A stretch of 64,000 nt of DNA, from contig NC_087247.1 of NCBI RefSeq assembly GCF_037042905.1, positions 5,208,001-5,272,000 of the forward strand, given 5' to 3'. Of this stretch, positions 5,264 to 64,000 are shown piece after piece. The notes beneath the pieces were generated by a model. That model saw only the letters and a program-made list of their open reading frames with translations. It made no database searches and was not told the origin of the DNA. The DNA is from Lytechinus pictus. Lineage: Eukaryota. Each line of letters begins with the position of its first letter. The first letter of the stretch is position 1. A program made the translations under genes and the position numbers.

Positions 5264-7376
5264 ATGAATAGATCATGGCTCTTCTTGGTCGTCATTGTGG
5301 CGATGGTGGCAGGTGTGTTTTCTGCTCCAGGTAAGAAATTATATTTTTTCGGTTTTAGAACTAGAACAAAACAAAATCCAAATAACAAAATAGCTTTAAA
5401 TAAATTGTGGTAGAAGGAAACGCGGTGCTTGTACTTTGGTTGTGCATTTTTTAACTTTAAATGAATGATGGAAAATTGACCAAGATAATTGATCGAGTAT
5501 AAGCAATTACTGCTGATTAGAATAAGATGGTAGTTTATCATTGATTTGATTATAAATTTTGTAACTATGATGTGCCAATAAAAATGAATGGATCACAAAT
5601 TTCGTGTGAAGCTTTCAACTTGTTGCTGAATTCTTATTTTGGGATTACCTTGCAGCGGAGAGAACGCGGAGAAGCAGCAGCAGCAGCAGTGAGGAGTCTG
5701 ATGCGGGATGCGATTGCGGCGATGGAGGGGACTGCGAACGCGATTGCGGCGACGGAGGAGGTGGCGACTGCGATGGTGGTGATGGTGATTGTGGAGATGG
5801 TGGTTGCGATGGTGGTGACGGTGGCGACTGCGGAGATGGGGGAGATGGTGACTGTGGCGGAGACTGTGGTACGGATGGCTGCGATGGTGATGGAAATTGT
5901 GGCGACGGCGATGGGGGCTGCGATGGCGGTGATTGCGGGGATGGTGGGGACGGTGATTGCGATGGAGGTTGCAATGGGGGTGACGGAGACTGCGGCGATG
6001 GTTGCGGCGATGGAGACAGTTCAAGCTCCTCCAGTAGCAGCAGCGAAGAGGAGAGCGGCGATTGCGAAGTTGACTGCGGTGCTGATGGTGGGGAGGCTGG
6101 CGGCGAGGTCCAGACCGTTTCTGTTCCTGCACCGATCCCAGTTCCACAGGCTCCAGAAATTCATTACCAAGTAGTTGAAAAGCCAATCTACATTCCGGTG
6201 CCTGTCCCTGCTGATGAGGAAGAGGATGATGAGGAAGATGATGGTGATGATGATGAGGGTAATGACGATGACGAAGGAGGAGATGATGGTGGTGATGATG
6301 ACGGTGATGCCGGAGATGATGGTGGAGATGATACAGGTGATGATGGTGGTGATGATGACGGTGACGACGATGATGGCAATGACGATGACGATTGTGGTAT
6401 GAACGGAGATAATGTTGGGTGCGGAGGAATAAAGACAGCTGGTGGGGAAGGTAAGTTGAACATCTGGAAAGATTTTTTTATCTAAAACATGCAATTATAA
6501 AATAATCATTCTGTATAAGTAGTAAATTCGCAGAACATCTCTAACGATTATTATTCCTATTTTCATGATAATGGGAATGCTTCCATAATTTTAGACGTAT
6601 TACCCTAGCTCCTTTTTTTTCTGGCGACTTTTTAGCTCTCGTTCAAATGTTCTTTCATTTGGCACCAAATACATGAGTAGAGAGTTGCAAAAGTAGTTTA
6701 ATGTTTTTCCAAAAGAACATTGCTTTAGCTTCGGGACTCGAACCATGCATGTGCTCCATACTCCGAAGGATTCAAGATAATCCAAGATAATCACTCTTGC
6801 TCTCATTTAATACAATTTGTTTTTAAAAAGAAATAAAACTTCTGAATAAGTAATGTCTTTTAATCATTCAGGTGTGAATGTCTGCACGACATGTCCATCT
6901 TTCATCTCTCGTACTCATTCTGTCTGTGGATCTGACGGTGCCACCTACGGAAATCTATGTGAGCTAAGAGAGTCGGCATGCAGGAGAAACGACAAAAACC
7001 TTAAGGTTATCAGCGAGGGTAAATGCAACGGTAAATATAATCAAGTTAAAAAAAGTCAAATCTGTAATGATCTATGCAAAGTAATATAAAAAGGGTATAC
7101 AATATGAATATTGTTGCCAAATATTGAGTAAGTATTTTTTTTTACAAGTCTCCAAACTCCAAAAGACTCCAAAAGAAACCTCGCACCAGGGAGTTGGGTG
7201 TTCTAACTCCCAACTTCCTGCTCGCACATGGGAAACGTAACGTTATTGCGGGACAATTGGAGTATGGAGAGAACATTGGTGTAATAGATTGCATGGTTCT
7301 GTTCATTTGAATGATGGTTTATAATCATTTTTATCTTTCATTATTTACAGGCAGTCTTGTAAAGCGCACCCACTGA
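5264..7376 (+). CDS. Cluster gene 1: secreted acidic Gly/Asp/Cys-rich protein with C-terminal Kazal domain (~348 aa)
   Basis: Coding exons 5264-5330 (MNRSWLFLVVIVAMVAGVFSAP), 5656-6450 (AERTRRSSSSSSEESD, GDC repeats, SSSSSSSSSEEE, PQAPEIHYQVVEKPIYIPVPVP, Asp/Gly tract), 6872-7030 (Kazal CTTCPSFISRTHSVCGSDGATYGNLCELRESAC...C) and 7351-7376 (GSLVKRTH*). All introns GT-AG and phase 1; total 1047 nt, open; AATAAA at 7811. Confidence 0.88.
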
Positions 7377-9014
7377 ATGCTGCTTCATGGCCGGCCCGAA
7401 ATACCAAGGCATGTCTTTCTATCTGATCGTATAATGGATGGAAGCAGTGATATTTATTTGTTTATTTATTCATTTATTTATGCCCTGTTTACAGACACAC
7501 CATTCCAATATGGAACTAATCACAACAAATCCTAGACAAATCAACCAACATATCTATAAGATTTGAACTCGATTATATTATATGTTAATTTCTTTGATAA
7601 TGATTCGAATGGATTTATGTGTCCTTTTCTACGGCAAGCTCTAACAAATACTTCGTATTATTTGATTGTCTTTATCTACCTCCATGCAATTTGTTTTTAC
7701 GTAATTTTTGACAAATCGATATCTTCTGTAACATAGTAATCGCTTATTTTGGTGATCAATTCTTTATCAATGTATTTTTTTATTTATTGAATCTTGTTAT
7801 TCTTTTAAAAAATAAATCAATTCATACGTCACATTATTGCTTCTTGATGGTTTGCATTATTTGTCATTCGTTTTCTTAAAAAGATTGTCAGGTCAAAATC
7901 AGAGAGAAAACAAAATGCGTGTGGGAGTGAGTGTGTGTGTATGAGGGTTGGTGAGTGTGTGTAAGAGCGAGAGAAACACAGAGAGAGAATGGAATGAGGA
8001 TGGAGAAAGAAAGAGCAAAAAGTGATAGGGGAGAATAGAAAGAGAGAGAGAGAGGGAGAGAGATGAAGACATAACTTAGAACTGATGAGCGTTTCATGAA
8101 AGGTCTTGTCGGACATTTTATCCGACAAGTCCTGATTTATCCGACAGTTACCATAGTAACAGTGCCTCCCAGCCAATCAAAATCTAAGTTGTCAGATCTG
8201 ATAACTTGTCAGACAAAAATGTTGATGAAAGAGTAAGAGAGAGATTGTGAGAGGGATTTTTTTTTAATTTGTTACTATTAACTGTATGACGTCACGTACA
8301 TGAAGGCAAATCACCACGCAATCATTCATGATAATATTATATATCCAGAGTTATCATAACATCAAAACACATCCCCAGAAATATCATTTTTCTATTATTT
8401 TGTTGTTGTTTTACTATCGACAAGACCACAATAATGTATTGGGTTGATGGGGGTATATCAACATGATCAATGTATGATGCATGTAAATATACTGAAATGT
8501 AATTAATGCTACGATTACAAATACTGTTCTTACGAATAACCCGTTCTTGCGAATTTCCCTTTTCTATGAGTTCAGGAATCTGTGTTTTAGTTAATCGCTG
8601 AACCCTGAAAACCAGGGAAAAGGAAAAAGCCAATCTATTAGTCATTGAAGAATATATCCTACAGAGATTTATTTTGTTTTTCGGAAAATGTGAATCATTG
8701 GTGGTGGAGGCACTAACAAAGAGGGCACTTTTTGAAGAATAAGCAAAACCAAGGGGAAAATTTCCACTTTGAGACGCCAATATGAACTGCGGAAATATGA
8801 TATATATTGTACAATGAAAACCATTCATGATAATTATGAATCTATATAAATAGGAAATATTAAATTTTTAATTCATTTACAGACTCCATTCATATGGCAT
8901 GAATATTTTGTTTTAAAATATATACAATGATAACATAAACAAATATATTCATAACTGTATGTCGTATAAATCAGTAATACATCAATACATATTTCAAATT
9001 ATTATAGAGATATA

Positions 9015-10801
9015 CACTCCCCTCCAAAAGTTTGGGAACACCTGCATTCAGTGTGTGCTTTTATATACTTGGTAGACTTTATTGATATTGAGGCTCATAG
9101 CATAGTTGAATTTTTGTTTTAAAGTGAAGATTATACAGCAGTGTAAATTTTGTTATTGATTCAAACAAATTTATACTCTCTTAAATGTCTGGCTACCAGT
9201 CAAGATGGCATTCTTTCAAAATGCTAACTTCTTTTATTACATGCAGTTATTGCTTTTATTCAGAGCTTTTACACTAAAACATGTGCAACTTCATTCATTT
9301 TTCCTTTTCCTAGTCAGAAGTCAGACACAAAAATAAAATCAAACAATACTCAGTGTTTCACTGATATGGAAAATTCGATGGAAAACTCGATGGGATTGAG
9401 ATCTGGGGACTAGGGTGGCCAATCCATGATTTCCAGGACTTGCTTCTCTTCCTTTTTCTTCAAGTAGTCTTTGCATAGTCTTGACATGTGTTTTGGGTCA
9501 TTGTCCTGCTGGAAAACGAATCCTTCTCCGATCAGGCGTTTCCCTGAAGGGATGGCCTTCCGCTGTAGGATTGAATGATAGCCGTGCTGGTTGAGGATAC
9601 CCTCTACTCTGTGCAAGCTGCCTACCTTTCCTGCACCAAAGCAACCCCAAACCATGACATTACCACCACCATGTTTCACAGTTGGCTTGATGCACTGGGG
9701 TAGCATCTTTTCTCCCTTTCGCCGTCTCACATAGGTACGTTGCTTGCTGCCAAACACCTCAAACTTTGATTCGTCAGACCAAAGAACCTTCTGCCACTGC
9801 TCCAAAGACCAGTCTTTATGCTTCCTAGCCCAAGCAAGCCTTTTCTTCCGGTTCTTTTCTTTGAGGAGTGGTTTCCTTGAAGCCACACAGCCCATCAGCC
9901 CTGCTCCACAGAGACGTCTTCTAACAGTTGAAGAACATACAGGCATCTCACGGGTGTTGTTGAGGCCAGCTGTAATTTGTGGGCAAGTCAGACAACGGTT
10001 GCGGAGACTGCTCACCCGAATGTATTTATCTTCAGCAGGAGATGTTGTTTTTGGCCTACCACTTCGTCTCCTGTTCCCATTAGACCCAGTGGCCTCTTTG
10101 CGTTTCAGGCTGTAGTGAACCGCATGGATACTGATCTTGAGTTTCCTGGCTATTTCTTGCATGGAGTAGCCTTCTTTCCTCAAAACTACAATTGACTGAC
10201 GTGTTTCCAAAGAAAGCTGTCTTGTCATAGCCATTTTAATTTTGTGACTGACTTCTGATTAAGAAAACCGAATAGGCAAAATGAGTGAAGGTGCACTTGA
10301 ATAAGTGTAAAAAAACTCTGAATAACTTTTGAATTCATGAATTTCAAATTGCACTGATGTCTACTCCACTTCCATGTATTTGCTTTAAACAAGGATTAGG
10401 CATTTGTCAAGTTCAGATGTTTTCCAGGATAAAGATGCAGATTTCCATAAATTAACTGTCTTATGAACAATACTGAGCAACAAATTCTGAGGACATCTGC
10501 TGTAACATTCACAAAATATTGGGAAGAATTTCAGAAAAGAACCCCAAACAGAACAATGTTAAAAGAAGTAGGCATTTTTTAGAGAATGCCATCTTGACTG
10601 GTAGCCTGCCCTCTTTGGCAGCTGCACGTCCCTTAAGAGCTTTGAATTTGTTTGAATCAATGATAAAATGTACACTTGTGTATAGCCTTCACTTTAAAAC
10701 AAAAATACAGCTGTACTATGAGGCTTAACTTCAGTAAAGTCTACCAAAGTTCGAAAAACACACACTGAAGGCAGGTGTTCCCAAACTTTTGGAGGGGAGT
10801 G
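9015..10801 (-). mobile_element. Tc1/mariner (DD34E-type) DNA transposon with long imperfect TIRs and TA target-site duplication
   Basis: TA|CACTCCCCTCCAAAAGTTTGGGAACACCTGC at 9015 and its reverse complement ending at 10801|TA. Inverted homology runs >200 bp, with a second block 9256-9331 matching ~10240-10325. Confidence 0.95.
9386..10234 (-). pseudogene. Tc1-family transposase, inactivated
   Basis: HTH region, GRPKTT, WSDESKF (first D), VMVWGCF and FQQDNDPKH (second D). WPP*SPDLNPIE has a premature TAG where Gln is expected, and the C-terminus after PIE is missing. Confidence 0.92.
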
Positions 10802-11236
10802 TACATCTATATACAAAGATAAATGATGAATTGAAATTTAACATAAAGAAGGTGTAGCATAATGCAATATACATAAGTTATCTAATTATCAAAAACAAAT
10901 CAGGAACTAAATAAATGTATAACGTTAGAGATATATCTTTGGTAATGGTGGCTTTGGTGGATTTTACATAGCTTGAATGAAATTAAAAAAAAAATGTACT
11001 TGATGTTAAAACTCACCCCTCTTATTTATAATCGCTTTGAAGAACTTGCAAAAATTATCAATTATGTTTTCATTGTCAAGTTTCATTATGAATATACATT
11101 TGTCTTCATCGCTAAGGTTCTTAAACTGTTTATATATATTTCATTGTATAAACTGTATTGTAGTGGCCACAAAATTCACTATTGCGTTTAAGCATGCCAC
11201 CCCCGATCTTGTAAAAATGAGCTTCATTTAGATATT

Positions 11237-11533
11237 AGGGAGTTTTCGCAAATCACTTGGCAGACGCTCTCTGGAACGCTTAGAATCTCTTGAAAATGCC
11301 CGTCAAATCACAATGATGAGCTTAGAGGTCTTTGTCGACAAGTGATGAACCGGAAGAGCAGATCGTCCTAAGATTCGGAGCTGACAAAAAATGCAAATAT
11401 GTCGTTTGTCCCGAGTCCAGAACGACACTCCTGTTTTTATTTACGACAAAGGCTGCTTTGTCATGAAGGGCTTTTGACACTAGATTCTCTACGTTCCAGA
11501 AAGCGTCGGCAAAGTGATTTGCGAAAATTTCCT
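11237..11533. mobile_element. MITE with ~50 bp imperfect TIRs
   Basis: AGGGAGTTTTCGCAAATCACTTGGCAGACGCTCTCTGGAACG ... CGTTCCAGAAAGCGTCGGCAAAGTGATTTGCGAAAATTTCCT. Confidence 0.7.
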
Positions 11534-12342
11534 TCTATAAAAGTGATGAGAAGAAGATGCTCTTATTTGATAAATACAAGCAATCACCCTGATCACAGCA
11601 GACAGGCTTTAAAACAATGAAATGAAATTCCCACCCCCCCAAAAAAAAAGGCCGTGGCATACTCAAGGCATAGGCACGAAATTACAAGCTATCAGTATCT
11701 GAAAATAGGTCTTTAACCTTCAGATGTCCTAAGGAAAAGGCCGACCATTAAGGCACTGCAACTGTGAGAAGTTTGCGAGATTTAAAAAATAAATAGTTAC
11801 TTAAGACGTTCTTAAGGAGTGCGTCCGTCTGCCCGCCTTTCCTTTCACAAGAACACCTTAAGATAATATTTTAACTGAAATGCGATGGAAGAATACAGTG
11901 TATCAAATGGAATGGTTCCAATGGAAATGAAGAGAAGACTGTCTTGCAAAATGACAAAACACATTGTAGTCAAAGTAAAAAGTTTAAAAGCCCTGAAAAT
12001 AAAACAGAAAAGTGTGAAATTTTTGCCAGACTACAAGAAGCGACAGCTTAAAAAAATAGCTAGCCGACAGAAGATTCAGCTGTAAAACGTAATGGGACAT
12101 AGTGAGCCTCATTTCTGGAACGGTTGGTCACCCTGAAGTGAAATATGCCTATCTGCGAAGACACTTGTACTGTACATTAAAAATCGAAACCAAAACAATA
12201 ACAAGTCTTTTTGTAAAACGTTTGCTAAAAATGTCAGGGAGGAAGTGGACAAAATCAACTTAAAAATGCTTCAAGAGACCCTCAAGTTGCGCTGGACGGG
12301 TAGTATAAAAAAAAATTGTCAATATGTTACGCTGTCCTATAA

Positions 12343-13048
12343 CCCTAAAAGGACTGGGCTATTTGAGACGTATTGAGGACGGGGGGGGGGGGGCATGATG
12401 GGCCCCTTCTGATCTTGGCCGCCGTTCGCGCGATCGCGGCGAAATTTGGCACGCACATTCTAAACTACAAGCCAGTATATGAAAAAAAAGTCAGAAAATA
12501 ATTATTTTTTTTCTATTATAAATATAATACGCACATTTATTCGTGAAAAACATTATTTGCATATTTTATCCACAATTTCACTTCAATTTTTTTTTTCCAG
12601 ATGTCATCTTTGTAATAAAGGTTTTACACAGAAAAATTGCGAAAGCCAAATTTGTCTTTGTTTATTTTTAATTCCTAATGTATTTCTCTGTTTTTTAATC
12701 TTTTGTTTTTCATTGTTTTCTTAAACGGAAATTATTACAGCCCATTTAACAACCAAATTAAACCCCTAGATCAATTAAAGCAGACCAATTAGAATGCGGA
12801 AAAATAATTACACTTTTACAAATTTCATCTCCCATAGACTTTGTACACAAAGTATAAAAATGAGTCATCTTCGGCATGACATTTTCTCGTAAAAAGTCAT
12901 GTGGCGTCGCAATGCTATACCCATACGTCGCGAATTTGGTCTCAAAAGTTGCGCGAGACTTAAAAGAAAAAAAAATTGGCGGCGCTATCTTTTTTGCGTT
13001 CTGGAAGCATTAGGGGGGGGGTGCGCCATGCCCCCTGTCCTTTTAGGG
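12343..13048. mobile_element. Non-autonomous piggyBac-like element
   Basis: ATAA|CCCTAAAAGGAC ... GTCCTTTTAGGG|TTAA: CCC/GGG termini with a TTAA-type target (left copy has one mismatch). Confidence 0.75.
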
Positions 13049-13571
13049 TTAAGTCTTATACCATGCTTAACAAAGCTTTGTAGAACTAGCTATAGTCCAT
13101 TGTGTCCATCTTACAAACTAGACCTCAGAAACTATGGTTTACTAGCCCAATGGAAGACTTCCACTTTTATCTCAGACCATAAGAGAGACAACAAATCAAA
13201 CCAGACTATGTTTAACTTAGAGACTTCTTGAAAGGACGAGGGAATTGGTGGTCAGATTGAAGGCTACACCTTTGGAAAGCGTTTGGCACTGATGATGTGC
13301 AGGAAAAGAATTCCACAAACTCCTGATCTTAAATTGAATAAAGGTAAAAATATCAATAACATATAAATATATAGACGACCAGTTTTTGGTCAATACCCAT
13401 CTATGTCGTCAAGAGCTGAGCAAACAAATTGGCGCACTGCTGAAGATTGCTAACAATCTTTGACTGTGAAATATGCCCGTCTGCCATGGATGGATGCCTC
13501 CCATGCACACTGTCTTATCAAGCAGAAGCCCCTCCAAACTGTTGAAGGAGACACCATAATAGATTGTCAAC

Positions 13572-13830
13572 GGGTCGTATGGTCCAGTGGATACAGCATT
13601 GGACTCATAATCGCAAGGTTTGGAGTTCGAATCCCCACTCTGCCATTGTCACCACTTTGATAAAAGGGCCCGAGAGTAATATATGTCGTTAGCCATTATG
13701 ACTGATTAACCTAGACGTAAAATGTTTCCTAGGTCAGCAGGTAATTGGTTATATACCAGCTTTAATTGGCGTTTACCAGCAAATGCTGTCCTGCCGAGTT
13801 CCTACGGGAGTTACCATAAACAGAAACAGA
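13572..13830 (+). mobile_element. tRNA-derived SINE
   Basis: A-box-like TGGTCCAGTGG, B-box GAGTTCGAATCC, body, and AAACAG repeat tail. Confidence 0.7.
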
Positions 13831-26953: not shown

Positions 26954-29900
26954 ATGGGCCGATTGGGGCTATCTATAGCCGCCATGCTGTGTTTGGTAGC
27001 GATAGCAGCCTCTTTACCTCGTAAGTAAAATCATCCTCCATACAAAACTTAATTTTTTTTTCAAAGTAGAACAAATATAACGGACATCATGGACAACATT
27101 CATTGAACATGTTGAATAAAATTCAGACCGAATGAGAAAAAATATTACCATGGTTATTCATGATATTTCTCAATGAGTTATGTGAGGTATGGGAAAATAT
27201 ATAATTCACAACGAAGGTTCTTATTTGTTAACATGGTTGACGGCAATTTATGATAAATCAGAGTTGGCAAATGATATGTTTTGATTTATGACAATGTTAT
27301 TATTGAAAAATCTGAATAGCAAATCGTGCGCATATGTGGCGTAAATGTATACTGCATGTAAAATCAACACCTGCAAAATGCAGGACACGATTTAAAATTA
27401 AATCAAACTTTCTCTTCTTGACTAATTTAAAGGTGAACGTTATCGCCGAAGCAGTAGCGAGGAAACGGATACGGGAGGAGACGGCGGAGGCGACTGCGGT
27501 GGAGATTGTGGTGGAGACGGAGGTGGAGACGGTGGCTGTGATGGTGGTTGTGACGGAGGTGATGGTGGTGATGGTGGTTGCGATGGTGGCGGTGACTGCG
27601 GTGATGGAGGAAATGGTGGAGATGGCGATTGCGGTGGAGACTGCGGTGGAGATGGAGGAGGAGACGGAGGTTGCGAAGGCGGGAGCTGCGGAGATGCTGG
27701 CGATGGTGGATGTGATGGCGGTGATGGTGGCGACTGCGGGGATGGTGGTGATGGTGGTTGTGACGGTGGATGCGATGGTGGTGGAGATGGTGGATGCGAT
27801 GGCGGTGATGGTGGTGATGGAGGGGATTGTGGAGATGGTGGAGGCTCAGGGGGCTCCGGAGACAGCAGCAGTAGTAGCAGTAGTAGCGAAGAAGACAGTG
27901 GTGATGGCGGGGATGGAGGTGATGGTGGCGATGGCGGCGATGGTGGTGACGGAGGTGGAGACGGCGGCGGCGGAGGAGGAGGGGGTGGAGGTGGACGAGG
28001 TGGAGGTGGGGGCGGTGGTGGAGGTGCACAAGCCCAAGCTCCTGAAATCCGCTACGAAATTATAGAAATACCGATTCAAATTCCAGCACCAGAAATCGAT
28101 ACCGACGACGATGACGACGATGCAGATGATGGCGGTGATGGAGGTGACGGTGGCGATGACGGCGATGGCGGTGATGAAGGTGACGGTGGCGATGATGGCG
28201 ATGGCGGTGATGAAGGTGACGGTGGCGATGATGGCGATGGCGGTGATGATGGTGATGGAGGAGACGATGGAGATGGTGGGGATGATGGCGATGGTGGAGA
28301 TGATGACGGGGGTGATGATGATGACGGTGGTGATGATGATGGCGGAGGAGGAGATGGAGGAACTTGTGGTGCTGACGGCGGTGATGTTGGCTGTGACGGA
28401 CTTAACGAAGCACCCACTCCTGGAGATCAACAAGGTAATCCTATTCATCACAAATTTAACAAGCATGCGGGTTTTGTCACCCTTCATGTATTCCATCACA
28501 TTGTCAGAGACACTCACCTGAAACGATGCTTTTAAATTAGTATTCATTGACCCCCCCCCCCAAATAAAGGATATGAATTAAAAATTATACTTTTCAACCC
28601 TTCCCTAACTAATTAGTTGCAATCATGTCTACAAAATGCAACATTGCACAAGTTAAAGCATTATTTTCTAAAAAAACACACCAAATCTTAGGTATTGAAG
28701 AAAATCATTTGACAGTATGTCAGATTTCTTTTACAGAAAATGTATAACATGTGCAAAAGTCCAAAATCGACCTGATATAAAGCACTGCCAAATTCGTCTA
28801 GTTAAAACTCTTGATTGCCTCCAAGAGGAGCAGTGGGATCAGAATTCGAAATACTGACTGTAAAAATTAGTGCCTCTGGATAAAGCTCGGATCATCGTTA
28901 TTCATTGCTCTGTGTATGCTAATTAGTTGTTTACCAATAGGGAGATCTATGCATCCTGTCCGAGTGGAATTGGATGCGATGTATCATAAAATGGCAATAT
29001 CCTGCTCTTTGTTGAATATTTCTTCAACTTTGAATGGAAACTATTTGGTATGGCCATGTACACTGTAAAAAATGAAGTGATAATTTAGCACTTCCAGTGC
29101 TTGTATAGTGACTGCACTATACCAGTGCTGATTTTCTAGTTCAAATTTAAACTAGAAAAGTGCAGTCACTATACAAGCACTTTAAGTGCTAAATTAGCGC
29201 TTCATTTTTTACAGTGTAGGGCCATGGTATGACAGTGAAAACAATAGCTACGCCTATTCTGATGTTTTTTTTTGTGTTTCTTTTTTCAGGTGGTGTTCTA
29301 GGTTCAACCTGCTCTTCCTGCCCTTCCTTTATCTCACGTACCCAAGCCGTCTGTGGGTCCGATGGAACCACCTATGATAATCTGTGTGAGCTCAGGGCTT
29401 CGGCATGCAAGAAAAAAGACACCACTCTCAAATATACTAGCGATGGAAACTGTGCAGGTATGTAGATTTTTTGATAATCATGATAAATTCTAAATCAAGT
29501 ATTCAATCCTGATAATATTATCAAGCTTGTACCTGAAAAATACAGCGAATAAATTAAAATTTTGATGGAATTGTGAGTTAAAATGGGAAAGTTCATGAAT
29601 ATGAATTTGCTATCTAAAAGCATTAATTTGGCAAACTTGGTCTAGTTTCGTTTAAATTGTACGTTATCGTGTGAATTTATGATGAAATATATTATTCCGC
29701 ATTTGATGATGTGATCATTATTGATTCTATAGGCTACATTATGCTCATTGGCATTCTAGAAACAAATATACCATGCACAATTTTAGTTTCCCTAGAGCAT
29801 GTAGAGAGACATTAGAAGTTAAGTAAAAATCGAATAAAAATGGATTTTGAAAGATTGCGCTCTTTACAAATCGTGAATTATTTAATTAGAGCAGAACGAT

Positions 29901-30475
29901 GATAATAATATACCACAGATACATTTAAAGTGATTGGTTAACATTGTTTTGACTTTAAAAAAATCTGAGCTAGAAGGTCACACTTGTCACATGTGTATGT
30001 GATATGTTACAAAAATGAAGCCCAGAAAAAATTGCGTTCGAAAATATTTATTTAGTGCTTCAAAAATTGAAAAATAAAGTGACCGAAAACACCATCTTAA
30101 TTTCATCCCATACACTTATGTGTACTATTTAGGCGTCTATTAGACACCCATTTACAAAATCGGGGTTTGCCTTGTAGTTTTAGCTTTTCATTCTCAATAA
30201 TGGTTGTTTTCAGGGTTTATTAGTTCTAATACATGCACTTGTACACATGTTTCATCTTGGTTTGATAATTTTTTAAATCGGCTGCTCACAAAGTTAAACA
30301 ATACCTTTAAGGAGATACATGAACACGTAATACGTTCAAAGTTGTTATGATTTACTACTTATTGATTACTGAATGTAGTAATCTATTCAAATCCAAGATT
30401 GAAAGACCTCTCATTTTATTCAAATAATTTTCTCTATTCACAGGGAGTCTGCTCATGCGACCGCCCCAGACCTAA
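26954..30475 (+). CDS. Cluster gene 3: secreted acidic Gly/Asp/Cys-rich protein with Kazal domain (~422 aa)
   Basis: Exons 26954-27020 (MGRLGLSIAAMLCLVAIAASLP), 27433-28434 (RERYRRSSSEETD ... SSSSSSSEED ... QAPEIRYEIIEIPIQIPAP ... CGADGGDVGCDGL), 29290-29457 (Kazal) and 30444-30475 (GSLLMRPPQT*). GT-AG, phase 1, 1269 nt. Confidence 0.88.
29061..29216. mobile_element. Small palindromic MITE (CACTG termini, TA flanks) in a gene 3 intron
   Basis: TA|CACTGTAAAAAATGAAG ... CTTCATTTTTTACAGTG|TA; nearly the whole element is self-complementary. Confidence 0.8.
29925..30310. mobile_element. TTAA-flanked MITE in the last intron of gene 3
   Basis: TTAAAGTGATTGGTTAACATTG ... CAAAGTTAAACAATACCTTTAA imperfect TIRs. 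Confidence 0.55.
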
Positions 30476-30696
30476 TACCGAATCAAGAAAGAGGACGCTG
30501 ATGGCAGCAGATACTTAAAATTATGGATTTTTTAATGGTACTTTATTGTATTATTTATTTGTTTATATTCTTTATTTGTCTTATTTCTTATTTGAAAAAT
30601 ATATTTGTATGGAAAATTGAATTATTTGATTCTCTTGCTTTTTTCTGGAAATATGTGTGTGTGCTTATGCGGATGGGGAAGGGAGTGCGACGCCAG

Positions 30697-31210
30697 GGCC
30701 CCGTCTTACACTACAAAAACACCGGTGTTGATTTAACACCAGCCCGGAATCTATATATGTCCACACCAGAGAAGTGTTAAACAACACTAGTTTGGTTTCG
30801 GTCTAAGACCAGATAGGTGTTTATACAACACCAATTAGTATTAAAACAGCATCGGTTTGATTCCAAAGTGGTGCTGTTTCAATACTTCTCTGGTGTGGAC
30901 ATACATAGATTCCGGGATGGTGTTAAATCAACACCTGAGTTTTTGCAGTGTACAAAGAGTAACGATTAATCCACGGAATCATCTATGGAAATCCAATAGT
31001 GTCATAATTTTTTCGACAGGAAATTTGCAAAATGTCCTTTGTATACAAAGGAGAACACACCAAATTGTCAAGAAATAAATTAATTTATGGATATGCATTC
31101 ATATTATCGAGAATATTTTTTGAACAAACATGCATTTTATATGTTGACTTTGCTGGCTTTCCATACTTGCGATTGATCGGATCAATCGCAAGTCTCTGTA
31201 AGACGGGCCC
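30697..31210. mobile_element. PIF/Harbinger-like MITE (CAG TSD) carrying a nested TA-flanked MITE at 30709-30950
   Basis: CAG|GGCCCCGTCTTA[CACTACAAAAAC...TTTTGCAGTG]TACAAAGAG ... GTAAGACGGGCCC|CAG; an uninterrupted copy lies at 31509-31779. Confidence 0.85.
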
Positions 31211-31508
31211 CAGGTGTGGTTGTGTGGGTAATTAATGTAGAAACAGAAAGTGACATTGAAAAATAGAGGAGAGGAAGGAGCTGAAATAAAGAGGGAGAGA
31301 AATAGACACATACACAGAGAAAGAGGAAGAAAGGGATGGGGGGTTAAGTTATACAGATGTCAGTGCTTTTATTCTTTAATTTCTGATATATTCTGACTCC
31401 TGGCGAACCCCCGCATCAGATTTAACGTGGACAAGACCAAATGCCACAACAAATCAGCAAAACATAAATATGTGCTATTCTTAAATTCCGTGTTTAAAAA
31501 CATCCCAG

Positions 31509-31779
31509 GGGCCCGTCTTACAAAGAGTTACGATTGATCCGATCAATCGTAACTCTATGGAAATCCATCGGTGTCATAATCTTTTCTACAGGAAATTTAC
31601 AAAATGGCCTTTGTAAACAACGGAGAACGCACCAAATTGTCAAGAAATCAATGAATTTATGGATATACATTCATATCTAGAAAATATTTTGAACAAACAT
31701 GCATAATAGATGTTGATGTTGCTGGCCGACCATAGTTGCGATTAATCAGATCAATCACAACTCTTTGTAAGACGGGCCC
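31509..31779. mobile_element. PIF/Harbinger-like MITE (CAG TSD)
   Basis: CAG|GGGCCCGTCTTACAAAGAGTT ... AACTCTTTGTAAGACGGGCCC|CAG. Confidence 0.85.
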
Positions 31780-32558
31780 CAGATAATACGCTTCAAAATA
31801 ATATAAAGCTCGTCGAAATAGATTAATCAATCAAAAGTATAAAAAAACTTTAGGGGGAATTACAAGAATAATTGAGAGACAGTGTTTTAATAGAGATGTG
31901 CACTCTTTAAGCTCTCAGCGGTCCTCACGGGTGAATTTAATGGCTTAATATTTTGACAAAAAATTGAGGAATAGAAAAAGGGAGCACACTATTAAAAAAA
32001 CACTTTTTCTTTTACAACATTCTGCCTGGTGACTTTATATAGTTGAGATTGCGCTGAATATTCACATAAAGGAGAGTATGGTATCTTATGTAATGTACAT
32101 AATTCAAAATAACAGCCCCAATTTTTCTGATATATTTTCTTAGGGGATCCACGCTCTACAAGCAATGCTTTTTAGTGGATCCTTTCATTTTACGAATGTT
32201 TTGGAACTCGTAATTGATTTGTAATCATTGTTATCATATTTCATTTGTATTTGTTTATATTTATGATGTATGTTTGATTTGTATTTGCTTATAATGTTGA
32301 TAATGGAAATGGAAAATTAAACTTGAACTTGAATTTAGTGGTGTGATATTTAAAACGGGATATCAATTTAATGAAAAGTAAAAAAAAAAGAAAAACAAAA
32401 ATGATGAAAATATTCGGGGTGAGACAGTGATTTTGGGGGACTAAGCGAAATGTGCTAATTAGTAAGTGCAAACGTAAAGTTATTGGCAAGTTTTCAAGTT
32501 TTATGCAAAAAAAAAACTCTCCCATTTGTCATTACCAGAACATAGTGTTTTCCCATCA

Positions 32559-32720
32559 NNNNNNNNNNNNNNNNNNNNNNNNNNNNNNNNNNNNNNNNNN
32601 NNNNNNNNNNNNNNNNNNNNNNNNNNNNNNNNNNNNNNNNNNNNNNNNNNNNNNNNNNNNNNNNNNNNNNNNNNNNNNNNNNNNNNNNNNNNNNNNNNNN
32701 NNNNNNNNNNNNNNNNNNNN
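32559..32720. other. Assembly gap
   Basis: Run of N. Confidence 1.
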
Positions 32721-32961
32721 CACACAATATTTAAATAAAAGAGTTGCCAAAGCTGTAGTACATGTATAACTTCACACATGTGTATACTTTCTCCCATACG
32801 TGTACTGTATCAAAGCAATAGCTTTGATCCAGCTGAGGCATGGCGGCTTGTCATTGTTCAAAACCCACCTTCACCCAACAAAGGAAATTATAATTGGTAT
32901 GGTGTCGAAAATCTGTCTATCTGACGGTCAATCGGATCGGGGTCGCCCTAGCCACTAACCC

Positions 32962-33033
32962 GTCTCTGTGGTCTAGTGGTTAAGGCACCGGCGTTCAAAG
33001 CTGGGGGCCCGGGTTCGATTCCCGGCAGGGACA
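32962..33033 (+). tRNA. tRNA-like cloverleaf (tRNA-Glu-like body, anticodon TCA); probably a pseudo-tRNA or repeat-borne copy
   Basis: Acceptor GTCTCTG/CAGGGAC, D stem GTCT/AGGC, anticodon stem CCGGC/GCTGG with loop GTTCAAA, T arm CCGGG-TTCGATT-CCCGG, followed by T6. Confidence 0.55.
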
Positions 33034-33371
33034 TTTTTTCGGCATCACCAATTTTTCCAAAAAGGGTAGATAGCTCAGGGGAACCTTGATTTAAGCTACG
33101 CCTACCATTGTTCTCTTCATCCATTTCTTTCACACAATATTTAAATAAAAGAGTTGCCAAAGCTGTAGTACATGTATAACTTCACACATGTGTATACTTT
33201 CTCCCATACGTGTACTGTATCAAAGCAATAGCTTTGATCCAGCTGAGGCATGGCGGCTTGTCATTGTTCAAAACCCACCTTCACCCAACAAAGGAAATTA
33301 TAATTGGTATGGTGTCGAAAATCTGTCTATCTGACGGTCAATCGGATCGGGGTCGCCCTAGCCACTAACCC

Positions 33372-33443
33372 GTCTCTGTGGTCTAGTGGTTAAGGCACCG
33401 GCGTTCAAAGCTGAGGGCCCGGGTTCGATTCCCGGCAGGGACA
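33372..33443 (+). tRNA. Second copy of the TCA-anticodon tRNA-like sequence
   Basis: Identical to 32962-33033 except GCTGA, which gives one mismatch in the anticodon stem. Confidence 0.45.
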
Positions 33444-33543
33444 TTTTTTCGGCATCACCAATTTTTCCAAAAAGGGTAGATAGCTCTGGGGAACCTTGAT
33501 TTAAGCTACGCCTACCATTGTTCTCTTCATCCATTTCTTTCAC

Positions 33544-33611
<68 letters not shown>

Positions 33612-33612
<1 letters not shown>

Positions 33613-34972: not shown

Positions 34973-35015
<43 letters not shown>

Positions 35016-35651
35016 TTACATTCCTCTTTTAAAGAAAAATACAATATCGAGTAATACTTTGAAAAAAAAATCAAATTTTAAGGGACAAGTTGGTTTTTAT
35101 TGTCGTTGAAAAAGGCGATTTGAAATAATATCCTACCATATGAATGTCATTTTCGGTACCATGTTTGAATACTAATTACCAGTGAATGCGTTGCATATAA
35201 TATTTCTACGAATCTCTTTGTGATATCTCCTGTCTCTCTTTTTGACGGTTCTTTGGCAGAATTCGAAGCAGATCGTCATCCCTCAATTTTTCTTTTCTTT
35301 TTGAATACATTTATTTAGACTTGAAAAAGCATTGTCTTGAAAAGAGAATATTGAGAAGGGGCCGGAAGTTCATGCATGTTGTAGTAGTACAAGTATGTTG
35401 TGAAAGTCATTTATCGAATTAACATTTTCTTACACATGGACTGATGATTATCATCATAATCCCCGCCTCCATGAGTTTAGCAATCTTGCGGACTTAAATG
35501 ATTGGATTAATTATGATACACAGATAAGCCCGAAGAGGGGATAATTTGTCAGCATTAAATCATTTGCACATAATATCAGTGAATATAGTTCAGGAAGCAA
35601 GACAGAGTGAGTTGAAAGAGCGTATTTAGAAGGGGAGAGACAGAAGGAGAA

Positions 35652-35688
<37 letters not shown>

Positions 35689-36723
35689 GGATGGAGGAGA
35701 GAGAGAGAGGACAAATGTACAATTGCTTATTGCTTTTACTAAATATATATAAAGTTCATATGCAAATGGTTTACCATTTGCTATTTTTATCCAAGCCATA
35801 ATATTTTTATATATAATCCCCAAGGAAGTCTATTTTTTTGTTATATTTATATTACAATTTCTCTTCCCCATTATCTCTCTTTAGCAACTAAAATGCTGTA
35901 TCAAATATGCACACAACGTACACACAAACACACGCAGCCCACACGGATCAGAAAATGTGATGAAACGACTGATGACACGGTGAAAACAAAATCATGTATA
36001 TTTCAAACAAAATAATTTATTCAATGTTATCATAGACAAAATGGCTGTCAAACATATCATGAGTAATATACTTTGAAATGTTAAGAAATTAAGCTGAAAT
36101 CATTAAAATGAAATATAACCAATTATGCTTATCAGGACGCAGACATTCAATGTCAATAAATTAAGACGGAAACACGAACAAATATAAATAAATAAAGCAT
36201 ACAATTTAATACATGGACATGGGGGTAATTACTTGTAAAACATAATCTCTAAGATAATGATGAAGAAACTTTCAAGTCTTCACTTGCTTCATTCGGAAAA
36301 CAGTGTAAATTATGAAAAGTTCGATATCTACAATTTAATTACTATTATGATATCACACACTCTTAAAGGGAAAATGAATAATGATGAAATTATGCAAACG
36401 TAATGATTGTAGTCACATTCTCTTACATCAAAGAACAAGACATTAGTCAGTTAGATAATCTATACCGTTGAGTTGACTGCCTGGTCACTTCCACCTCCAA
36501 GTGTAGAAATCTGTTGGGAAAAAAAATCAGTGAGAGAATAGCAGTCTGAATAGCAGAATCAAGTCAATTCAAGTCAAATAAATTCAATCTTTTTGTTCTA
36601 GTTCACAATATTTCCTCTATTCATCATATAAACTTTAACACACCATAGAACATGTTGACAGGGAAAATGTATGCCATTCCTGGAATCAGCGCTTATGTTC
36701 GGGATATGTATTGTGTCCGCCTT

Positions 36724-36930
36724 ATGAACGGGAGGTCGTGGGTTCGATCCTTGGCCGAGTCATACCAAAGACTTATAAAAATGGGACCTTCTGCCTTCTT
36801 GCTAGGCGCTCAGCATTTAGATTGGAGAAGGGTAATAATAACATATTATGTTATGTAGGGTCCGCTAGCAGAGCGGTTTCCTAACTGAAGTGGCTACCCT
36901 GGGTAAATAAAATATATTATATTATTATCA
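36724..36930 (+). mobile_element. 5'-truncated tRNA-derived SINE
   Basis: B-box GGTTCGATCC, body, and AATAAA plus (ATT)n tail. Confidence 0.7.
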
Positions 36931-37469
36931 TATATATCATCATCTAAAAACTTCGTCAGTTCTTATCGAGGAAACATTTTGGATATCTTTCGAGTTTGAG
37001 TCTTTTCCTTGAAATGATCACACATATTTATTCACTTTGATAACTGAATTGATTACTCTTTTCTTTTATAAACTAATATTGATTTATTGTGGCAATTTAT
37101 TGATAATTCATCTTATGATACGCAAACACAGGTGAGCCTAAAACCGGGTTTTTCAATGATGCAGGTGTATGGACATTTTTGTATCCTGCCATGAACATAC
37201 ACTAGTCAACAAATCGATTTTTACTGAAATAAAACATTGTTTCTTACGGGATTATTTATTGTAAATTGTGTACAGGCCTCTGCTTTCTACGTTCCATTTA
37301 CAATATTTATGGGCATACTCGATAAGTCCAGTCAATGATACTCGGAGTTAACGTGATTGTCATTAACATGAAGTTAAACCTTCTCGATTTTTAGAAAATT
37401 TAATATCTATATTACCCAGGTGTCAGTACTGCTTGTTTTTTATCTGGCGCTTGCGCATTAAAAAACAAA

Positions 37470-37605
37470 AAAACAAATTGCTTTCGTACATACTAGGTAC
37501 CCATGCACTGCATATGGATGGATAGTGGCAAGTGTAGATAAACCCTCGCCAAAGGACGCGAGTGCTGATGTGAGACTTGAACCCCGGACCTTGTGGATTA
37601 AAATG
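37470..37605 (-). mobile_element. SINE remnant
   Basis: Minus strand reads GGTCCGGGGTTCAAGTCTC (B-box) ... CCTTTGGCGAGGG ... ATGGGTACCTAG, a SINE core-like sequence. Confidence 0.5.
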
Positions 37606-37625
37606 AAAAAGACTTACCAAACTAT

Positions 37626-38957
37626 TCACTGGCAACATGCGTCGTTGGAACCAATGCATGCGGGATCACCGGCTTTGAGACCACCACAGCCACCAGCAGC
37701 ACCTCCCTGGCCACCATCGGTACCGCTATCACCACCTTCAACTCCTCCATCACCGCCATCAGCAACGCCATCGGCGCCGGCATCACCATTCCCACTGGCT
37801 CCACCTTCAGCTGCACCAGCGTCTCCATCGCCACCACCAGCACCACCGTCACCAGCGGCATCACCATCACCACTTGGGCCACCTTCAGCGGCTCCAGCAC
37901 CATCACCGCCATCGTCACCACCGCCAGCACCATCACCGCCGGCGTCACCATCCCCACTGACACCACCTTCGCCAGCACCATCACCACCGTCACCGCCGTC
38001 AGCACCGCCATCACCGCCACCCCCTCCATCGGTGTCCTCATCTCCACTGTCTGGTTCAGCTGCCACTGGTACTTCTACATAGATTGGCTTCTCGACAACT
38101 TCAAAGTGGATTTTTGGTGCTTGTGGAACTGGAACATGGACAGGGTAAAACTCTGGAGCAGCAACTGGAGCAATTGCAGGAGCAGGGGCAGCTTGATAAT
38201 TACCACCACCACCACCACCACCACCACCGCAGCCTCCGCCGCCACCACCACAGTCTTCCTCGCCACTACTTCCAGAACTAGAACTAGAGCCAGAGCCTGA
38301 GCTATCTCCATCCCCGCAACCATCTCCACCATCACCACCGCAGCCACCATCACCACTGCCACCACCATCACCACCATCACCGCCATCGCACCCTCCGTCC
38401 CCTCCACAATCTCCGCCATCTCCACCACCACCGCTACCACCGCCATCTCCTCCACCTCCACCATCGTCACATCCTCCGTCACCGCATCCTCCACATCCTC
38501 CACCGCCGCAGTCACCACTCCGTCGAATACGATCTTCTGTATAAAGCAATTTCATTTGAAACTTAGACCTTAATATATTTATTATAAAACATGAATCTCT
38601 AAAATGACAAGCATTTTTTTTTTTAATGAAACGCTAAATACGATTTTTGCTTTGATTCAATTTATGATATGGGTATTTCGTAGCTTTACGCAATTTACGA
38701 GATAATACTGCCATGATTGCGTTGCCATTGTGACAATATATGAGCCCTGTGCAATAGTTTATTGCAATATGATAATTATAACTCTTTATCAAAATCATTA
38801 TTATAACGGTTAGTGTTATTATTTCATGTACTGTATCAATTATATTTGAAAGATTGAAAGATTCCATAATAGCCTTTCATGTTTACTTACTTGGAGCAGC
38901 AACTACAAGCGTTGCAACCAGAAATAAAATAGCAAGCGTCAACCAAGATCGTGACAT
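37626..38957 (-). CDS. Cluster gene 4: secreted Gly/Asp/Ala/Cys-rich acidic protein without Kazal domain (~325 aa)
   Basis: Exons 38957-38891 (MSRSWLTLAILFLVATLVVAAP) and 38536-37626 (KDRIRRSGDC ... SSSSSGSSGEED ... PVPQAPKIHFEVVEKPIYVEVPV ... GGCGGL ... ACCQ*). Phase-1 GT-AG intron, 978 nt. Probable 3'-UTR intron 37617-36511 and minus-strand AATAAA at 36021-36016. Confidence 0.88.
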
Positions 38958-39142
38958 TTTGTCTCCCAAGCCCAAGCCAAGCTAAAAGTACATCAAATAG
39001 TATGTTTCTTCAATAAATCATAAGCTTCTTAGTGATCAGAAAACAAGTATTTTTTCAAAGGCAGCTGTTATTTGCCTCTGTAGATGTTACTCGGTGTTCA
39101 GCTGGAGAAATGAGACTGATGTCCACTCCAGTCTCAGACCTC

Positions 39143-39150
39143 TATTTATA
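39143..39150 (-). promoter_or_regulatory. TATA box of gene 4
   Basis: TATAAATA on the minus strand, ~190 bp upstream of the ATG. Confidence 0.6.
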
Positions 39151-62390: not shown

Positions 62391-63068
62391 CAATATTTCG
62401 AAGCTGTAGTAAAGGGACAAATAATGTGGATTGTATCAAGCTATCACACAAAAATGTCAATCATAAAAAAATAGTAACCGTTCTATATTTTCACATCCAT
62501 TGAGTATTTGAGAAATCTTTGTGAAACTTGAACTGTCGAACAAATTTAGCGCCTTCTCGTGATGAATGAAGGTCATTCAACCCTTTTATATAGCAGAAAG
62601 CTATGCACGTAGATTCTATCTTTATTCTATTTTAAATTCCATGCGTGAGAATTCATTTTGTATAAAAAATATGCAAAGAAAAAACTCATTTAAAAAAAGG
62701 TCGAGAATCAAACTATTCATTTTCCATTTTGAAGGTTCGATTGAACATTTGACCTGCATAACTAGATTTTTAGATGACACCTTTTAGAAAATAAATTTTT
62801 CATGATGTACTCTTTAATCATGGCTGATAATAACTTCAAACATGAAACATTACTAATCTTTGGGTTTGCCAAAATTTAATAGTTAAAACTCTTGACTAAC
62901 GAGACCTCTGATTAATATGTTTAAGATCATTCGGTTTTATCTCATGTTCTTCTTTTTTTCCTGCATATTAAAGACTTTCACTTTTCCCTGAAGATAATCC
63001 ACTTTATTTTCATTTACACTCGTTTTCTTTTTGTGCGTGCAGGCAATTAGTAACAAAGGAATAACGGG

Positions 63069-64000
63069 ATGGACAGATTGTTTGTCATCGTTCTGTTTGT
63101 TGCTATGGCAACCATTACGACGGCAGCTCCTGGTAAGTCTATATAAAGATTAATGAATTTCTGTCATGGAGAATCATAACAAATTTGACTCTATCTTCTT
63201 GAAACGGCCTGTAATTACTTTACATTCTCCGAGAATGTCAAGTAGTTATAGACCGTTTCAAGACCATTTTTATTATTATCAATCGGTAAGAATATATTCC
63301 GTAACTCACATAATTATTTTGTAGGCCTAAACAGCCCATGGGCCCTCATGGGCCAGCCGTACGCATCTAGTCGCTTGTCTCACCCGAGCTTTTTGTATTA
63401 CCTTGTGATGTCAATATAAGGACAAGTTTTGTTTTCTTCAAATCAGTAGAACCTTTGATGTCCTATATCTGCATTAAAAAGGAAGCCTTATTTTTGTTAA
63501 AATTCCAAAAATGAAAAATCACAATTCCTTTCAAGCCGGGTATCCCTATTGCATAATGAATGTAATTGCATAGAAAGAGAGTTCTCCACGGTGATTCGTT
63601 GTGATGTGTTTACCGATAAATGACCGAATCTTTGAAAAAAATGTAAAAAAGGATGACATGGTTGAGGTTTCAGCTGAGAAATTTCATATACCAGGAGCAT
63701 TTGATTGGTTTACATTCCAAGTTTTAAAAAAGCTAGGTTTCTCATGATTTTTTATTCTTGGCACAAATAATGCCAAAATCCGAAATGTATTCACAAAACC
63801 CAAACTTTGAAATTACATTTAAAATGATTATCCCTACATTTTCTGAATCCACTTCATTTCTTCTTTCCATCGTAATTTTTCACTCATGTAGTTAACCAGA
63901 GCACAAGTGTGGAAGTTAAAGAACCACCGCAGAACATGTCAAGCGGCCAAATAGACACGATAGAGGGACCGAAAGAAGTATCGAGTCGTGAAGGAGAGGA
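63069..64000 (+). CDS. Cluster gene 8 (partial, runs off the window): secreted protein related to gene 7
   Basis: Exon 63069-63132 (MDRLFVIVLFVAMATITTAAP, donor G|GTAAGT) and exon from 63892 (VNQSTSVEVKEPPQNMSSGQIDTIEGPKEVSSREGE...), open to the window end. EPPQNMSSGQID resembles gene 7 EPQLLSSGEID. Confidence 0.75.

Follow-up and report, generated by a model that had tools for sequence, protein, structure and literature searches.

The 64,000-nt stretch of Lytechinus pictus DNA considered here (assembly GCF_037042905.1, contig NC_087247.1, forward-strand positions 5,208,001 to 5,272,000; hereafter the window) contains eight paralogous genes, and is probably the left part of a tandem cluster encoding secreted, disordered, acidic matrix proteins of mineralised tissue, above all of the tooth. 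To judge by its sequence, the eighth gene is the orthologue of phosphodontin, a major acidic tooth phosphoprotein of Strongylocentrotus purpuratus. The other seven, rich in Gly, Asp and Cys, are new. The genes of the locus form a genuine family that arose by tandem duplication and is transcribed, as seen for gene 1, and it is plausible that these seven encode matrix proteins; their role in the mineral matrix and their expression in the tooth would be expected from their neighbours, their core motif and their composition.

Exon plan, transcripts and encoded proteins

The window was scanned for an ATG followed by a hydrophobic core and by a Pro codon plus 1 nt in front of GT. Exactly eight signal-peptide exons of the family were found, together with one further, unrelated match at 7438, so that the eight exons listed in the initial annotation, all ending in Pro plus 1 nt, were recovered and all have a GT donor. 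Their length is 67 nt in genes 1 to 6, exactly as had been stated (gene 4 is on the minus strand, unlike the other seven window genes), 73 nt in gene 7 and 64 nt in gene 8. Pairwise nucleotide identity among the 67-nt exons, compared without gaps, is 32-74%, against 27 ± 6% for random 67-mers from the window, and all 13 exons of the wider cluster described below can be aligned with a single short indel and share a conserved GCN-CCN-N end. The large exon is entered 300-800 nt after each signal-peptide exon through an AG acceptor in the phase that keeps the frame, in agreement with the phase-1 intron proposed earlier. In every window member the ATG, hydrophobic core, Pro plus 1 nt and GT donor are intact, and the frame runs on uninterrupted until it reaches either a stop or a phase-1 donor. 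There is one large low-complexity exon per gene, to which genes 1 to 3 add a Kazal exon of phase 1-1. The proposed plan is thus an upstream exon (indicated for gene 1, see below), a signal-peptide exon of 64-73 nt ending in (Ala)-Pro plus 1 nt, a phase-1 intron and a large exon, the last of which would evolve through expansion and contraction of short repeats. One part of the earlier description did not hold. A TATA box had been assigned to all eight genes, whereas a TATA[AT]A element close to the ATG is seen only in gene 5 (at -72) and gene 7 (at -50), and a shared TATA box is therefore unsupported. An acceptor-like AG lies 9-36 nt before the ATG of most signal-peptide exons.

RNA sequences were compared with positions 4300-9350, which hold gene 1 only, using contigs of three runs from three studies (X5, X6 and X10) and the raw reads of X16. 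Joints spanning GT..AG introns run from 5330 to 5656 in contigs of X5 and X6, from 6450 to 6872 in X6 and X10, and from 7030 to 7351 in X6, the last with near-identical joints in X10 and in the raw reads of X16. All three coding introns of gene 1 (5331-5655, 6451-6871 and 7031-7350) are thereby confirmed by spliced transcripts, the check that had been suggested for the predicted junctions. The spliced product is a protein of 348 aa in one frame, made up of the signal peptide, the Gly/Asp/Cys exon, the Kazal exon and an 8-codon terminal exon, which fixes the Gly/Asp/Cys reading frame for this gene; a Val/Met/Ala frame through the same large exon is ruled out by a stop inside it. The contigs first match the window at 5241/5244, an AG acceptor 20 nt before the ATG, and carry 29-261 extra bases at their 5' ends, so there appears to be a further exon upstream of the gene 1 signal-peptide exon, which again speaks against a TATA box at the ATG. 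The RNA alleles differ from the window by about 5%. The large exon shows indels of -6, -9, -9 and +6 nt (between 5673 and 6035), all in frame, so that individuals of the species differ in the length of the repeat exon. Sequence words of gene 1 occur in runs X5, X6, X7, X9, X10 and X13. They are absent from some 15 further runs that are probably RNA of this species (X19-X33), which suggests that its expression is restricted, and in the raw reads of X16 it is found at trace level only.

These transcripts also bear on whether there are genes here at all. The large exons consist of GGN/GAY repeats, in which more than one frame is open, as would be the case if the models were a by-product of simple-sequence DNA. 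That explanation is refuted for gene 1 by the splicing of GT..AG introns at the predicted sites, and it is further contradicted by Kazal domains scoring above the Pfam threshold and by orthology to tooth proteins that have been sequenced; we regard it as extremely improbable.

The composition of the mature proteins changes along the window in the manner first described for genes 1 to 7. Genes 1 to 3 encode 25-41% Gly, 23-26% Asp and 6-9% Cys, gene 4 encodes 42% Gly, 15% Asp and 11% Ala, and gene 5 reaches 61% Gly with a His/Tyr patch (GHGYGH). In gene 6 a Ser run comes first and Gly follows, gene 7 has 49% Asp and 9% Cys, and gene 8 consists of Glu/Ser repeats. Cys residues number 14-30 in genes 1 to 4 and 7. 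Of ten members compared, including genes 9 and 10 downstream of the window, eight (genes 1 to 6, 9 and 10) have R-x-[KR]-R at residues 24/25-28, in the forms AERTRR, AERTRR, RERYRR, KDRIRR, GRVRR, GRQRR, TERLRR and AERIRR, respectively, and in most of these a Ser run ending in Glu follows directly. Genes 1 to 5 and 10 have in common a core, (P)QAPEIHYEVVEKPIYIPVPVP, rich in Pro and Val and in places Ala; where it is present in genes 1 to 7 it is 20-45 residues long, and PQAPEIHYEVVEKPIYIPVPVP is common to five of those seven genes. The motif picked out in the initial annotation, QAPEIHYEVVEKP, is exact in gene 2 and occurs in variant forms in genes 1, 3, 4 and 5. In most members the large exon ends with a C-x(5-6)-GC motif. 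Sites of the type S-x-E, recognised by kinases of the FAM20C type, number 1-4 per protein in genes 1 to 7 and 22 in gene 8.

The Kazal domain reported for genes 1 to 3 is well supported. The three exons score 38.8 to 40.4 bits with Pfam Kazal_2 (Table 1) and that of gene 10 scores 45.5 bits, all above the curated cut-off of 22.8 bits (PF07648/PF00050). In gene 1 the sequence is C-TT-C-PSFISRTHSV-C-GSDGATYGNL-C-ELRESA-C-...-C, which has the full six-Cys pattern with a core of the VCGSDG.TY..C type. The closest relatives of known structure are the Kazal domains of agrin and follistatin, elastase inhibitor, rhodniin and infestin. The predicted P1 residue, read off at the position following the second Cys, is Ser in genes 1 and 3 and Ala in gene 2.

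The wider array and the published tooth proteins

The 30 kb upstream and 170 kb downstream of the window were also examined (264 kb in all; coordinates continue the numbering of the window). The same scan found no signal-peptide exon of the family in the 30 kb upstream. Downstream there are five more, and the cluster runs at least 165 kb past the end of the window, giving a total length of at least 230 kb. Kazal-bearing genes (1 to 3 and 10) stand side by side with Kazal-less ones (4 to 9). A genome-wide search with the core motif found only the six members in this array. When the Kazal exon of gene 1 was used instead, the four best matches were in the array and the next best was at C2:17.86 Mb; weaker matches were divided between this array (up to C3:5.52 Mb) on the one hand and C14:9.16 Mb and other places on C3 on the other. 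The exon on C2 (17855384-17855530, plus strand) is 55% identical to that of gene 1, a higher similarity than most Kazal exons of the array show, and could belong to a dispersed member of the family.

At 79502-80771, on the plus strand, there is a 76% identical copy of the poly-Asp/Cys exon region of gene 7, which keeps the C-terminal DDDADDGPSKLLTLF and the stop. No recognisable signal-peptide exon was found for it, including at the expected place near 75.1 kb, and it may be a partial duplicate or pseudogene. The same could in principle apply to several of the models, namely genes 6, 7 and 9 besides this copy, which would then be decaying or untranscribed duplicates. The RNA comparison covers gene 1, the gene 6 signal-peptide exon is the most diverged (32-49% identity), no signal-peptide exon is recognisable for the gene 7 copy, and an open frame is weak evidence in low-complexity exons that are open in several frames. 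Decay on this scale is nevertheless quite unlikely, given that each member in the window keeps the complete set of start, splice and frame features described above, with an in-phase AG acceptor, and that RxRR stands at the same residue in genes 1 to 6.

Gene 8 links the window to the tooth. Phosphodontin (Glean3:18919, Sp-Hypp_2410) of S. purpuratus has 35 repeats (Mann et al. 2010, PMC2830187), and its heavy Ser phosphorylation and presence in the tooth matrix are established for the S. purpuratus protein only (PMC2830187). Gene 8 has the same layout of signal peptide, tandem repeats of the EISSGEGEQPK type and Asp-rich C-terminus: about 20 repeats of 11-12 residues, E[IVM]SSGE.E.PK, are followed by an Asp-rich tail. 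The repeats are fewer than in the published protein, which is from another species, and one of the seven published repeat peptides is matched exactly. This is the phosphopeptide EISSGEGEEPK, encoded at 64173, and it was the single exact match when 42 published S. purpuratus tooth peptides were compared with the six-frame translations of 164 kb. As had been noted from the window alone, the gene runs past its end; the large exon extends to 64736.

The initial annotation had referred to a group of tooth-matrix proteins with Ala/Pro-rich motifs alternating with acidic Gly-rich motifs, most of them with Kazal domains. This agrees with the literature: five such proteins were reported, four of them with Kazal domains (Mann et al. 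2008, PMC2614417), and both this group and phosphodontin are regarded as tooth-specific (PMC2909932). Orthologues of two of the genes, Glean3:17590 and Glean3:22278, lie in the same tandem cluster 50-85 kb past the end of the window. In Glean3:17590, the Kazal-like region shares 96% identity with the gene near 131 kb and the C-terminus 92% with the gene near 145 kb. The DEED-type repeats of Glean3:22278 recur at the end of the gene near 114 kb. The genes between 113 and 147 kb have the Ala/Pro composition of the published group. Their signal-peptide exons, of 73 nt and ending in AP plus 1 nt, are of the same design as those of the window genes, and the exons of 64-73 nt can be aligned across both groups, which are adjacent within about 50 kb. 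This common 5' exon design and the position in one tandem array point to common descent of the Ala/Pro-Kazal tooth proteins and the window family.

The window genes also resemble the published group in their acidic Gly-rich blocks with Cys pairs of the CG..GSGEGC type and in the C-terminal C-x(5-6)-GC, and Glean3:17587 in particular has a signal peptide ending in AAP, then REKR, then an acidic Cys/Gly/Asp stretch. They are, however, not the five published proteins. Genes 1 to 7 encode 0-4% Pro and 2-11% Ala, compared to 17-21% and 14-25%, respectively, in the published group, and have at most the short Pro/Val core plus large Cys/Asp/Gly repeat blocks in place of long Ala/Pro blocks. The Kazal domain of the window genes has the full six Cys and follows the acidic exon, whereas the Kazal-like domain of the published group has an Asp-rich insertion and comes directly after the signal peptide. 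On Pro/Ala content and on the type and placement of the Kazal domain the identification was rejected, and genes 1 to 7 are, on this sequence comparison, a separate, uncharacterised Gly/Asp/Cys-rich subfamily of the same array. The earlier proposal that the window is the genomic locus of the Ala/Pro-Kazal family thus holds for the array, with its orthologues of Glean3:17590 and Glean3:22278, phosphodontin as gene 8 and the peptide match described next, but not for genes 1 to 7 themselves as members of the published five.

A further connection is through Glean3:10589, which is known in both tooth preparations from the single peptide VIEKPIYIPVSVPR (PMC2614417). It represents the window family's core motif, with 11 of 14 residues identical to gene 1, and the composition described for Glean3:10589 fits genes 1 to 5. 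The exact VIEKPIYIPVSVPR sequence is not encoded by any gene in the 264 kb. Glean3:17588 is also of interest. Its N-terminal part has an orthologue at 227600-230400 on the minus strand, where REKR comes after the signal peptide MKTVTGLALLVCFFLLCRVTEGAP. The 'acidic Val-rich motif' published for Glean3:17588 corresponds to one reading of an exon that is also open in a second frame, and this second frame is Gly/Asp/Cys-rich with SSSSSSSEES. As no peptide from mass spectrometry falls within the Val-rich part, and as splicing proves the Gly/Asp/Cys frame in gene 1, the motif probably results from a Gly/Asp/Cys exon having been read in the wrong frame, and the Glean3:17588 model is probably a fusion of several genes.

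In the mode of action proposed, a furin-type convertase would cleave the predicted RxRR site (residues 25-28) and expose the Ser/Glu run, which a Golgi casein kinase of the FAM20C type could then phosphorylate. Once skeleton-forming cells have secreted them, the polyanionic chains in their phosphorylated form would bind Ca2+, Mg2+ and the mineral surface, the Cys residues could cross-link the proteins into the matrix by disulfides, and the Kazal module may inhibit or bind a protease in the mineralisation space.

It could be argued instead that genes 1 to 7 encode secreted acidic proteins with a non-mineral role, as protease-inhibitor or immune proteins, as mucus or adhesive proteins, or as extracellular metal-binding Cys/Asp proteins, and have only ancestry and chromosomal position in common with the tooth-matrix genes. 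Kazal domains are primarily protease inhibitors, and several of the solved relatives named above are of this kind; 6-9% Cys in Asp/Gly repeats would also fit metal binding; and the raw reads of X16 show gene 1 at trace level only. We consider it rather unlikely, because tooth-matrix genes proven by proteomics, with the same 5' exon plan, lie beside and among genes 1 to 7, because the core motif is known from peptide sequencing of the cleaned mineral matrix of S. purpuratus teeth, and because the Ser/Glu runs and poly-Asp composition fit known mineral-matrix phosphoproteins.

A matrix role for genes 1 to 7 therefore remains the preferred interpretation, although several observations count against it. 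The RNA comparison covers gene 1 alone. None of the 42 published tooth peptides is encoded exactly by genes 1 to 7, and the link to Glean3:10589 is one peptide of 14 residues from another species. Genes 6 and 7 have no Pro/Val core and gene 7 also has no RxRR, so that their membership rests on signal-peptide exon design and position in the cluster. Finally, the homology searches yielded no relatives outside this genome. A word-indexed protein search with the large exon of gene 1 was swamped by low-complexity words and gave one irrelevant bacterial match, and the Pro/Val cores of gene 4 and gene 1 gave no match either. A HMMER search of 1.84 billion representative proteins with a 34-position core profile built from six paralogues gave none at E <= 0.001. 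These blank results are weak evidence because the profile is short (a full-length match would score about 40 bits) and the libraries appear not to contain these urchin proteins.

The tooth proteomes were obtained after in-gel trypsin digestion, and the number of tryptic peptides that could have been seen was calculated. In silico, each of genes 1 to 7 gives 0-4 peptides of 7-35 residues, and several of these come from the Kazal exon, whereas phosphodontin gives 20; gene 7 gives none. The Lys of the core motif is not cleaved by trypsin because Pro follows it, and the S. purpuratus peptide VIEKPIYIPVSVPR was visible only because in that paralogue the motif is followed by Arg. The paucity of tryptic sites offers a concrete explanation of why very Asp-rich tooth proteins have never been found. 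No publication treating these genes as one cluster was found, and their SPU/LOC identifiers returned no literature; the placing of phosphodontin in one tandem array with Kazal proteins, with a signal-peptide exon in common, is new with respect to the literature searched. Phosphodontin and the Ala/Pro Kazal proteins, so far separate entries in the tooth proteome, are thereby joined with the Gly/Asp/Cys proteins as one family and array. This provides biomineralisation research with a defined locus and a candidate case of shared regulation.

Mapped features and intervening DNA

The mapped features are given in Table 1. The assembly contains three gaps of N within the window (17881-18020, 22732-22904 and 32559-32720), none of which touches a mapped exon or is crossed by a reading frame. 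That the gaps break coding exons was therefore rejected, except that the last exon of gene 2 may still be hidden. This exon was not found, and blastn of the regions downstream of the three Kazal exons revealed no common terminal exon. It may be short and lie in the gap 17881-18020, since that gap starts 315 nt past the donor at 17565 and the equivalent intron of gene 1 is 320 nt long. The gap at 32559-32720 is between the gene 3 Kazal exon and the gene 4 stop.

Table 1. Coordinates of mapped features. Numbering is that of the window, continued past its end for genes 9 and 10 and the rows below them.
Feature	Position	Strand	Remarks
Gene 1 signal-peptide exon	5244..5330	+	ATG at 5264, 67 coding nt, encodes MNRSWLFLVVIVAMVAGVFSAP + 1 nt; from scan and RNA joint
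Gene 1 large exon	5656..6450	+	Both flanking introns confirmed by spliced contigs; in order AERTRR, Ser run with Glu, Cys/Asp/Gly block, second Ser run, Pro/Val core VPQAPEIHYQVVEKPIYIPVPVP, Asp/Gly block, C-x-GCGG end
Gene 1 Kazal exon	6872..7030	+	Phase 1-1, six Cys; Pfam Kazal_2 38.8 bits; RNA joints on both sides
Gene 1 terminal coding exon	7351..7377	+	GSLVKRTH then stop; joint 7030>7351, GT..AG
Gene 2 signal-peptide exon	15560..15626	+	67 nt; 74% nucleotide identity to that of gene 1
Gene 2 large Gly/Asp/Cys exon	16097..17023	+	AERTRR, Ser runs, (SD)n, exact QAPEIHYEVVEKPVYIPVPVP; splice sites predicted
Gene 2 Kazal exon	17377..17565	+	Alternative acceptor at 17389; Pfam Kazal_2 40.4 bits
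Gene 3 signal-peptide exon	26954..27020	+	67 nt
Gene 3 large Gly/Asp/Cys exon	27433..28434	+	RERYRR, diverged core QAPEIRYEIIEIPIQIPAP
Gene 3 Kazal exon	29290..29457	+	Phase 1-1; Pfam Kazal_2 39.1 bits; AG and GT flanks
Gene 4 signal-peptide exon	38891..38957	-	67 nt
Gene 4 large exon, stop-terminated	37626..38536	-	No Kazal exon; in order KDRIRR, Gly/Cys/Asp block, longer Ala/Pro stretch and core QAPKIHFEVVEKPIYVEVPV, Gly/Ala/Asp block, Cys-rich end
Gene 5 signal-peptide exon	50433..50499	+	67 nt; TATAAA at -72, unique among the 67-nt members
Gene 5 large exon, stop-terminated	51080..52374	+	61% Gly, GRVRR, GHGYGH patch, core QAPKIHYVEKPIYVPVP
Gene 6 signal-peptide exon	53984..54050	+	67 nt; most diverged, 32-49% identity
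Gene 6 large exon, stop-terminated	54390..54829	+	VGRQRR, Ser run with Glu, then Gly/Asp/Ala; no Pro/Val core
Gene 7 signal-peptide exon	57658..57730	+	73 nt
Gene 7 large exon	58433..58983	+	49% Asp, 9% Cys; no RxRR, no Pro/Val core
Gene 8 (putative phosphodontin orthologue) signal-peptide exon	63069..63132	+	64 nt
Gene 8 large exon, start	63892..64000	+	Continues to 64736 beyond the window
Gene 9 signal-peptide exon	90975		Short acidic Cys/Asp/Glu member opening with TERLRR
Gene 10 signal-peptide exon	106039		Full Gly/Asp/Cys + core + Kazal member
Signal-peptide exons of three genes	115702, 131967, 147150	-	Downstream of gene 10
Further Gly/Asp/Cys exon	228.8-229.4 kb

The DNA between the genes holds several repeats. 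At 8018-8355 there is a short dispersed repeat where RNA reads and contigs pile up to great depth, and where all four runs show loose ends by the thousand as well as strand-switch joints; this repeat is probably a mobile element with inverted ends that is either strongly expressed or present in very many copies. Between genes 1 and 2, on the minus strand at 9410-10234, there is an open frame of 274 aa for a transposase of the Tc1/mariner type (HTH_Tnp_Tc3_2, 68 bits). Reverse-transcriptase remnants (RVT_1, 48.8 bits) lie on the minus strand at 20876-22372, between genes 2 and 3, about 360 nt from the gap at 22732-22904. Genes 4 and 5 are separated by an 8.3-kb satellite (41042-49368) of approximately 376 copies of a 22-bp A-rich unit, GTCCTTAATATAAGAGAAAAAC, with 70% matches, which accounts for the strong AT skew and low GC content at 40-50 kb.

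Comparison with other acidic matrix proteins

Very acidic secreted proteins are known from other mineralised tissues. Aspein and Asprich of bivalves and the acid-rich proteins of corals are secreted and have very long Asp runs. Gene 7, at 49% Asp, and the Asp/Gly C-terminal halves of genes 1 to 3 resemble them in composition; however, no homology was detected, and what sets this cluster apart is its regular Cys spacing together with RxRR, the Pro/Val core and the Kazal exon. In the sea urchin tooth itself, Asp content is tightly correlated with calcite of very high Mg content, and a late-expressed Asp-rich protein has been postulated, with P16 as the speculated candidate (Alvares et al. 2009, PMC2758014).

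A broader parallel is with the vertebrate SCPP/SIBLING cluster, which includes DSPP, DMP1 and the enamel and milk/saliva genes. There too, secreted, acidic, disordered proteins are encoded in tandem, the members are alike mainly in signal peptide and 5' structure, S-x-E kinase sites are present, the repeats evolve fast, and Kazal-bearing and Kazal-less relatives stand side by side. SCPP genes have an untranslated first exon, and for gene 1 too an exon ahead of the signal-peptide exon is indicated. The introns are of phase 1 here and mostly of phase 0 in SCPP genes, and the mineral is Mg-calcite here and apatite there. The homology searches found no sequence similarity to SCPP genes and no sign of descent from SPARC-L. 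In view of the lack of similarity, the other intron phase and the other mineral, the likeness is best read as convergent rather than as membership of the SCPP family.

These comparisons lead us to a more tentative proposal, which we hold to be possible but doubtful as yet: that the Gly/Asp/Cys genes, especially gene 7 and the Asp/Gly halves of genes 1 to 3, encode the Asp-rich proteins of high-Mg calcite, and that the array is an independently arisen counterpart of the SCPP cluster from which the Kazal module has been shed. Gene 7 and the Asp/Gly halves of genes 1 to 3 and 10 are concrete candidates for the Asp-rich high-Mg-calcite protein of Veis and colleagues (PMC2758014), and on this proposal the proteins would have escaped all proteomes through the near absence of tryptic sites. 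SCPP genes arose from the 5' exons of SPARC-L with loss of the Kazal/calcium-binding part (PMC9122587). If the proposal is correct, the array of phosphodontin, Gly/Asp/Cys and Ala/Pro Kazal genes repeats that step, the Kazal module being shed while the signal-peptide and acidic 5' exons are kept. The array in any case offers an independent test case for the evolution of acidic matrix clusters, parallel to the passage from SPARC-L to SCPP (PMC9122587).

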